A stretch of DNA of 63,628 nt, the filler included, from Olpidium bornovanus S191 (taxonomy: Eukaryota > Fungi > Olpidiomycota), in assembly GCA_017911155.1 (NCBI GenBank). It is 31 parts of 31 records of this genome, joined end to end, with 100 filler letters (N's around TTAATTAATTAA, not from the genome) between each part and the next. Parts side by side here need not be neighbours in the genome. Positions count along the whole stretch, not along the records: positions 41,182 to 42,230 come from JAEFCI010003941.1; 30 more parts are not named here. The stretch is one strand, 5' to 3'. The translations under genes and the position numbers were made by a program. Shown here piece after piece: positions 41,182 to 42,778 of the stretch (position 1 is the stretch's first letter; each line of letters begins with the position of its first letter). The notes under the pieces are model-generated. The model saw only the letters and a list, made by a program, of their open reading frames with translations, did no database searches and was not told the origin of the DNA.

Positions 41182-41943
41182 CATGTGAGGCAACTCGAAA
41201 GCCCCGTAGTGCACCCCGCCGGCCACCGACATCCGCTGTATGGTGAACGCCTCGTCCTCGCCGGCGGCGGCGTCGTCGCCGCGGGGCGCGACGCTCCCGT
41301 CGAGGACTTCCACGAGGGCGTTGACGACGGTGGCGTCCGAGAGGCCCACGCCCGGAGCCGCCTCGTAGGCGAAGGCCCGGTTTTCGAGATAGCTGTGCCT
41401 GTACTTCTGCACGGCGCCGTTGTTGACGAAGTGCAAGACTTTGGCTTCGTCGGTGAAGGTGATCACGCCGTGCGGGACGGAAGCCGGGTCGATCTCGAGG
41501 GAGACCGAGCTGGCCTTCGGCGCGAAGAGGAGGGCGAGGGCGTTCCCCCCGCCCTCCTGGAAGCCGCTCATGCCGCAGAGGAAGCCGCTGTGGACGTCGA
41601 ACGAGTGGAGCACTGGGAACTCGCCCTCGCCGTCGTCCCAGGCGGCCTCGAAGTACTTCGTCGCCGAAGTGTTGAACCTGATCTTGCCGTGCCGATTGCC
41701 CCGGCAGTCGGTGGACTGCTCGAGGTAGGTGATCCTTTCGCCGGGCTCGAAGTCGTGCGACTCGTAGCAGCCCAGGGGGCTGCCCGCCGCGAACTGCTCG
41801 CCGTCGCGGAAAGTCATCCGTATGCCCTCCATTCGCCGCTCTCCCCAGACTTCGAGCTTCGTGATGGCGTTGCCGTTTCCGCAGCCGGTGTGGGAAAAGC
41901 GGGACCCTTCCCGGTTCCCGAGGGCGCTGACGTCGGCTTCCAT
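41182..41943 (-). CDS. Jacalin-like lectin plus aerolysin-type domain protein (natterin-like Dln1/Aep1 family), intronless, 3' partial
   Basis: GNREGSRFSHTGCGNGNAITKLEVW...GIRMTFRDG...GSPLG....DFEPGERITYL...GNRHGKIRFNTS...FDVHSGFLCGMSG...LALLF parallels zebrafish Dln1 as recalled ([25 protein letters not shown]...FTPGECFTSL...GTRLGAIKFKTN...MDVGSGYCLGIVG...MGFMF). The end HYGAFELP matches GRASFDLPY. Confidence 0.78.
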
Positions 41944-42778
41944 CGCAATCGCCGCCCGGACGGGCGGGCGCCGGACGGACTCGTTAGCGCCGCCCGGACC
42001 CTTTCCCTCTCGAGCAAGCGCCCACTCCCTCGCATTGACTGAAGGTCCGTCATTACAACTTCCTCCCTGGATAACGCTCGGACTTTGCAGGTTACCTGCG
42101 GGGAAGGACGACCGGGAGTTAAAATAAAAATAAATAAATTAAGTTACGGGGTCGAAGGTCCCGCGCAAATTAACCCGGCCGAATCATTTCCGGGCTGGCT
42201 GGAAACGAAAAAAAAGAAAAAAAAAAAAAANNNNNNNNNNNNNNNNNNNNNNNNNNNNNNNNNNNNNNNNNNNNTTAATTAATTAANNNNNNNNNNNNNN
42301 NNNNNNNNNNNNNNNNNNNNNNNNNNNNNNCATGGGAGTCAGATACGTACGATGGGGGAAGTGTAGCAAACAAAAGAGGGAAAGAGGGAATACGACGTGT
42401 GTATCGGCGCGCCGGGGACAACGTTTTATCGCACCCGTCATCCCATTAAGAATTCGGTGTTTTAAAAAGGCAGGAACCAGATGGCAGTTTTAAAAGAATT
42501 CATAGAGCCTTGTGGCTGCTTTGTCTCCGTCACTTTTCGAGCCTTGCGCGCTCTTCACCGGCTCGCCTTGGTTTACCACACGGAGGTGGTGTGTGGGGGA
42601 TGCGATAATAATCCGGTTTCTTTTTCTCCTCCCCCTTGAGCCTTGAGGGGGGTAAGAAATCTAATGCGGGTTAAAAATCTAATGCGGGGGGGGGTTTTTT
42701 TTTACAAAAAACAACAGAAAAAAGCGCTAATGATAAAGATGCAATGAAAAACAACGGGAGGACGGTTTTGATTCTTGG

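Follow-up and report, generated by a model that had tools for sequence, protein, structure and literature searches.

In the window (the whole stretch of DNA that was analysed, 63,628 nucleotides), a genomic piece at positions 41182-42230 carries the beginning of a gene that had been read as a jacalin-aerolysin pore-forming toxin. The question raised by this locus is whether its product is a lectin-guided pore former or a relative of such proteins that no longer makes pores. Lectin-guided aerolysin-type proteins are known in fish, lamprey, Dikarya fungi and other eukaryotes. Olpidium is the zoosporic fungus closest to the terrestrial fungi; it parasitizes plant roots and serves as a virus vector. 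A member in this lineage would extend the lectin-guided aerolysin-type family to a zoosporic fungus. If the full-length protein indeed has neither the sugar-binding Asp nor the membrane hairpin, it would also represent a natural re-use of a pore-former scaffold.

We found that the fragment is a new, unannotated and divergent member of the known natterin-like family. It is described in these terms because natterin-like proteins have already been catalogued across eukaryotes, fungi included (PMC8402412), and Olpidium is unmentioned among the 12 top-ranked papers on natterin, aerolysin and jacalin pore-forming proteins. Our main reading, to which we assign a probability of about 0.45, is that of a diverged family member with doubtful pore activity. 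The value of the finding is modest and consists of a truncated gene, an unannotated divergent family member and the correction of a claimed aerolysin motif.

The gene and its coding signal

The gene is read on the minus strand. The list of open reading frames and their translation, the GC content at third codon positions (GC3) and a check for intron signals identify 41182-41943 (minus strand) as the 5' part of a protein-coding gene. The frame runs without a stop from the ATG at 41943 to the edge of the piece at 41182 and comprises 254 codons, in agreement with the coordinates and strand originally predicted. Translation of the upstream frame showed that no other in-frame ATG lies between the stop at 42139-42141 and the ATG at 41943, and codon periodicity is absent upstream of the latter. 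The GC content at codon positions 1, 2 and 3 is 0.64, 0.46 and 0.91, respectively. GC3 lies at 0.75-1.0 in each 20-codon window along the whole frame, and only two windows fall below 0.85. No donor-like intron signals were detected in the visible frame, and this together with the high GC3 throughout upholds the predicted lack of introns for the visible part. The predicted lack of a signal peptide likewise holds for this part, as the N-terminus is hydrophilic, provided that the ATG at 41943 starts the protein. The absence of a signal peptide is usual in the natterin-like and lectin-aerolysin family (PMC13433851). The piece is at most the 5' three quarters of an intronless eukaryotic gene.

The 5' flank (41944-42230, minus strand) is non-coding by composition, judging from the upstream translation, periodicity and sequence, and is T-rich on the gene strand at about 42115-42230. 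The latter interval is an AT-rich island within a piece of 63-67% GC and ends in A8-G-A13 on the plus strand. On the gene strand the T-rich tract sits 170-290 nt upstream of the ATG, at a place where public contigs break. Most probably it represents a promoter-side or genomic poly(dA:dT) tract upstream of the gene. The A-run was also considered as the poly(A) tail of a plus-strand transcript, and this was rejected since a G interrupts the run and the homology and codon evidence all lie on the minus strand. The plus-strand open reading frame at 41185-42042 (285 aa, GTG start) is an antisense shadow of the GC3-rich gene and not a gene.

The lectin module

The N-terminal part of the protein, aa 5-147 (41503-41931, minus strand), is a jacalin-like beta-prism I lectin module of the natterin-like type, as determined with phmmer, hhalign, profile HMM, AlphaFold and Foldseek. 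When all PDB chains were searched with phmmer, the best solved structures were Dln1 (4ZNO, E 7.7e-12, aa 5-180 of the fragment against 27-203) and the lamprey protein LIP (5ZU4, E 1.9e-7). Against 26 full-length natterin-like proteins, hhalign aligned aa 3-149 at 99.3% probability (E 9e-21), and hmmsearch with the natterin-like profile found the module at E 1e-30. In the AlphaFold model, which was built on an alignment of 34 sequences, pLDDT was about 90 for aa 11-100 and 121-140 and about 60 for aa 101-120. Foldseek matched the lectin model to Mevo lectin, Dln1, LIP and banana lectin (E 5e-9 to 1e-5), and also to Heltuba and ZG16. Because the PDB, profile and model comparisons agree, aa 5-147 is confirmed as a jacalin-type beta-prism module of the natterin-like kind. 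The original prediction that the first ~145 aa resemble the jacalin module of Dln1 is thereby substantiated, in that ~147 aa match Dln1 and LIP well above chance and model as a beta-prism.

Of the checks that had been proposed for the lectin, Foldseek found Dln1, but Pfam did not recognize the module: no Pfam family matched the fragment at E <= 10, Jacalin (PF01419) included, and the NCBIfam scan gave no family either. Several relatives (P0002, P0003, P0007, P0013 and P0024) do match PF01419. A protein-feature search with the whole fragment yielded jacalin leads only, at 0.84. HMMER searches of 1.84 billion representative sequences returned 62 matches at E <= 1e-3, mostly jacalin or jacalin plus aerolysin proteins. 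Aerolysin-like proteins of fish and fungal proteins with two modules predominate among them. They include proteins of fish (Clarias, Lepisosteus, Gadus), Mycena pura, Aspergillus homomorphus and a liverwort as well as metagenomic proteins, and nearly all of the full-length matches have the lectin plus aerolysin architecture.

The fragment resembles Dln1/Aep1 and LIP/LPFP in its N-terminal jacalin-type beta-prism with the same order of motifs (Foldseek E ~1e-8) and in having no signal peptide, although its identity to them is only 24-26%. The similarity to Mevo lectin (7BSM), banana lectin, Heltuba and ZG16 lies in the beta-prism I fold of three four-stranded Greek keys (TM score by target 0.7-0.84, rmsd 2.2-3.6). 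Mannose-binding jacalin-related lectins, however, are single-domain proteins of 17-22% identity to the fragment, and the key Asp of their binding loop is missing here. The modular combination of a lectin with an aerolysin-like part is shared with the fungal protein LSL of Laetiporus (1W3A) and with aerolysin-like proteins of Armillaria, but these carry ricin-B or fascin-like lectin modules. Lectin-aerolysin proteins without classical signal peptides have been described in both Armillaria and Laetiporus (PMC13433851).

The sugar-binding pocket

The pocket was mapped by HMMER/PDB alignments onto the LIP residues named in PMC6537362; the alignment posterior in the loop is moderate. The GG-loop Gly15 and Arg87 of LIP are kept as G13 and R84. 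By contrast, Trp39 is replaced by R36, and in the ligand-binding loop (aa 127-135; 41539-41565, minus strand) the Ser-Asp-x-Asp of LIP and Dln1 has become Gly-Gly-x-Asn, with Ser132, Asp133 and Asp135 of LIP replaced by G131, G132 and N134. In LIP, the mutation D135A abolishes both glycan binding and cell killing (PMC6537362). Since the Ser, both Asp and the Trp of the pocket are replaced, canonical mannose binding by the fragment is unlikely, as far as its sequence can tell. The module had been described as the mannose-binding jacalin module of Dln1; the type of module matches, but the usual mannose-binding residues are missing. Asn134 and the remodelled loop could still bind sugar.

Two bases distinguish the piece from contigs of two public runs, X1 and X6. 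The change 41546 C>A converts codon 133, inside the sugar-binding loop, from Gly to Val, and 41884 G>C is synonymous. Run X6 also contains a low-depth (2.2) contig of 244 nt that has only 31 bases, 41570-41600, in common with the piece. Translated in the frame of the gene, with its loose ends included, it shows the DVHSGFLCG core of the lectin but another binding loop. It is probably a paralogue from this sample, which would make the gene part of a small family.

The region after the lectin module

The rest of the fragment, aa 148-254 (41182-41502, minus strand), was assigned no fold by pairwise and profile searches, pLDDT, composition and counts of beta-patterns. Comparison of aa 146-254 with the natterin-like profile by hmmsearch gave an E value of 0.1 in a search space of one, with a misplaced alignment, and hhalign against natterin-like aerolysin modules gave a probability below 1%, with or without the Olpidium relative P0001 described below. 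The mean z of Smith-Waterman alignments of aa 150-205 with 26 aerolysin modules was 0.35 over shuffles. From aa 158 onwards the AlphaFold pLDDT was below 50. For the post-lectin part nothing was returned by Pfam, PF01117 and PF03318 included, by NCBIfam or by PDB searches, nor by a protein-feature search of aa 146-254 alone. The aerolysin core that had been placed in the C-terminal half was not shown by sequence, profile or model in the 107 visible residues. This half gave no aerolysin match, but it is cut by the edge of the piece.

The same applies to the motif on which that core had been based. GGVHYGAFELP had been equated with RASFDLPY of the aerolysin core, and this is not supported, as the scores of the last 55 aa against four natterin-like modules resemble those of shuffled sequences (p 0.45-0.99). 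Against P0001 they gave p 0.46-0.67 relative to shuffles. In the MAFFT alignment of 34 sequences GGVHYGAFELP is placed against the L-P-Y-T motif of the family; in the pairwise alignment with P0001 it is placed against an upstream segment of P0001 instead.

The composition of the region also departs from that of the family. Ser and Thr make up 10% of aa 146-254 (7% in the last 69 aa) compared with 16-33% in 26 natterin-like aerolysin modules, which bears out the prediction that the pre-stem segment is poor in these residues. Asp and Glu account for 14-16%, compared with 6-14% in the 26 modules. Only one 9-residue window has an alternating hydrophobic moment of at least 2, while the 26 modules have at least 4 and on average 17. 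By the same measures P0001 has 15.7% Ser and Thr, 16.4% Asp and Glu and 12 alternating windows. At aa ~195-235, where relatives place the pre-stem hairpin, the fragment is acidic and rich in Ala and Gly. An amphipathic Ser/Thr-rich pre-stem hairpin was not found in the visible part; the piece ends at 41182, and the hairpin or hallmark strands could lie beyond this position. The original prediction had also offered a lectin that lost pore formation, and of its two readings this one agrees better with the loss of the Asp residues and with a segment that is acidic, poor in Ser and Thr and not amphipathic. The lost Asp pocket and such a post-lectin region may mark a non-pore-forming variant, although the gene is truncated.

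HMMER alignments to Dln1, LIP and four natterin-like matches run 25-60 aa past the lectin module, to aa 175-208. The best local match of aa 166-182, which is not significant, is the C-terminal NG strand pair of natterin-like modules. A deleted module was considered on this account and rejected, because P0001 carries both regions in order.

The relative in Olpidium bornovanus

P0001 (KAG5458008.1) is a partial hypothetical protein of 799 aa from Olpidium bornovanus (contig JAEFCI010009124.1, locus L001, 636-3430) and is the only close relative that was found, with 38-40% identity over aa 14-207 of the fragment (E 1e-25 to 1e-30). Its source is a metagenome-binned assembly from non-axenic zoospores (PMC7865070). 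Since this species is a zoosporic parasite of plant roots, the earlier attribution of the gene to a zoosporic, possibly plant-parasitic fungus agrees with the closest relative.

Both proteins have the motifs HTGC-x-NG and DGE-x-FAAG, both have no Ser-Asp-x-Asp loop, and their GC content is similar. The alignment continues for ~60 aa past the lectin module, to aa 207, and contains a shared S-x-x-x-R-A-[FY]-x-Y-[EK] stretch; the first ~55 aa of the post-lectin region of the fragment run colinear with what follows the lectin module in P0001. When the post-lectin part of the fragment alone was compared with P0001 232-400, BLASTP gave E 0.009 and phmmer E 0.0013 in a one-to-one test. Unlike the fragment, P0001 has a ~90-aa leader, recognisable C-terminal strands of the aerolysin type and introns elsewhere, the last of these because its gene model is longer than its CDS. 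Besides its lectin and aerolysin-like core, P0001 has a signal peptide, two knot-like motifs of six Cys each and a long repeat tail rich in Pro, Ser and Arg.

The core of P0001 aligned end to end with natterin-like proteins (hhalign 97.9%, 271 columns), and the C-terminal part of P0001 alone matched their final strands (E 8e-5). No Pfam family matches P0001. The model of the core matched Dln1 and LIP over 282-336 positions (Foldseek E 1e-13), and other aerolysin-family entries ranked lower. The VIA Z score against Dln1/LIP was 16.7, which is only ~2 above lectin-only matches. The hairpin region of the model has pLDDT <50, and the model leans towards a Dln1-like fold because it was built on an alignment of natterin-like proteins. 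In this form, the core of P0001 models as a Dln1-like two-module protein. For the fragment itself, homology to the aerolysin module is weakly suggested by one weak pairwise bridge to P0001 and by colinearity. Taken together, sequence and modelling provide moderate support for the descent of the post-lectin region from a module of the aerolysin type. They give no evidence that it still works as one.

Distribution and phylogeny

A maximum-likelihood tree was built from 48 lectin modules. It groups the fragment with P0001 (100/99) on a long stem that falls neither in the clade containing fish nor in the one containing Dikarya. The jacalin-aerolysin proteins of Mycena pura and Aspergillus homomorphus, both matched by the lectin module of the fragment, belong to the Dikarya clade and are thus separate from it. 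The branch of P0001 (1.68) is longer than that of the fragment (0.25), and the lectin module of P0001 is partly eroded. Horizontal acquisition had been suggested for this gene; it is unsupported, since the pair does not nest inside any labelled clade of this tree, in which the majority of rows lack an organism label. An origin by transfer from fish or bacteria was set aside with the same tree and the same proviso, and no sign of a recent transfer emerged from the sequence comparisons.

Sequence of the piece occurs in 20 public runs, which come from 9 studies, and 17 of these runs contain at least half of its words. Most of the 20 runs carry one organism label, and partial presence was seen under three other labels and in a soil metagenome. 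The contigs from X1 (1841 nt) and X6 (1901 nt) are colinear with the piece, with 2 differences in ~1000 nt, and by their record coordinates they appear to reach beyond 41182 by 830 and 987 nt, respectively, so that public data seem to contain the rest of the gene. The protein itself is absent from a collection of 15 billion proteins, both by word-index searches and by exact look-up of the 254-aa product. A word-index protein search with the fragment and the Olpidium core found no match, and a scan of JGI metagenomes with six peptide patterns gave 112 pattern matches, none of them a relative. The coding sequence has a GC content of 67%, compared with 67-69% at locus L001.

Two RNA runs (X23 and X24) gave 0 reads on the piece, with ~6% of each sampled, which is no valid test of expression. 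These runs carry the organism label of the runs that match the piece best; the gene could be silent there, or the sequence may not belong to the organism of that label.

Discussion

The reading that we prefer places this gene in a rapidly evolving branch of the natterin-like family (Dln1, LIP and aerolysin-like proteins), a branch shared with Olpidium bornovanus. The region after the lectin module would derive from the aerolysin-type module of the family and would have diverged past recognition, and the Ser/Thr-rich amphipathic pre-stem hairpin would be missing where relatives have one. As a diverged module without the canonical hairpin is the premise, the protein would most likely be a soluble protein that binds a glycan or another ligand with changed specificity. 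It may be cytosolic or unconventionally released, as in its relatives. Any membrane activity would need a non-canonical C-terminal module, the last part of which lies outside the piece.

A bolder extension of this reading is speculative, and we regard it as rather unlikely. Root parasites of the Olpidium type may possess a private, fast-evolving family derived from natterins, in which the mannose pocket was rebuilt, with a Gly/Val polymorphism in its loop and other loops in paralogues, and the hairpin was turned into a short acidic loop. Such a converted aerolysin-fold protein would serve in non-lytic recognition, possibly of glycans on host roots or virus particles.

The closest competitor is a working pore former, in which the jacalin module binds a membrane glycan, after which an aerolysin module that is divergent yet complete, and lies partly beyond the edge of the piece, would oligomerise and insert its hairpin. 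Nearly all full-length matches combine a lectin with an aerolysin module, and P0001, which models as a two-module Dln1-like protein, has 12 alternating hydrophobic windows in its C-terminal part. In the fragment, both the reading frame and the codon bias persist through the post-lectin region, and the public contigs seem to have space for another 830-987 nt. However, the 109 visible aa contain a single alternating window, their Ser and Thr content falls below the range of the family, and neither profile nor pairwise comparison gave an aerolysin signal. The segment at the hairpin site is acidic and rich in Ala and Gly, and the Asp that LIP needs for killing is absent. Compared with Dln1 and LIP, the fragment thus differs both in the pocket (Gly/Gly/Asn and Arg instead of Ser/Asp/Asp and Trp) and in a post-lectin region that is Ser/Thr-poor, acidic, without detectable aerolysin signal and cut short by the edge of the piece. 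Pore formation by the protein of the fragment is doubtful, and we consider this explanation unlikely.

It is somewhat less likely still that the protein consists of a jacalin-like lectin followed by a C-terminal tail that has no relation to aerolysin and is either lineage-specific or partly disordered, and that it resembles natterin-like proteins in the lectin only. All significant similarity does fall within aa 3-149, and aa 158-254 combine pLDDT <50 with empty feature, Pfam, NCBIfam and PDB searches. An unrelated tail would not, however, be expected to align colinearly with P0001 for ~60 aa past the lectin and to share the S-x-x-x-R-A-[FY]-x-Y-[EK] stretch with a protein that, further downstream, matches natterin-like proteins in their aerolysin strands. 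Several independent natterin-like alignments also pass aa 175-208.

That the gene is a decaying copy, in effect a young pseudogene, or comes from a co-occurring organism instead of the labelled genome is improbable: the only close relative comes from a binned assembly of non-axenic zoospores (PMC7865070), the protein is missing from the 15-billion-protein collection, the piece occurs in runs labelled with four organisms and a soil metagenome, and functional residues are lost, but 254 codons at GC3 0.75-1.0 contain no stop or frameshift, the same sequence recurs across the runs of several studies with 2 differences in ~1000 nt, and its GC of 67% fits the Olpidium locus.

One of the relatives retrieved with the lectin module, the aerolysin-like protein of the gar Lepisosteus oculatus (P0013, XP_015217114.1), carries a CARD N-terminal to its jacalin and aerolysin modules and represents a death-fold fused to a pore former.
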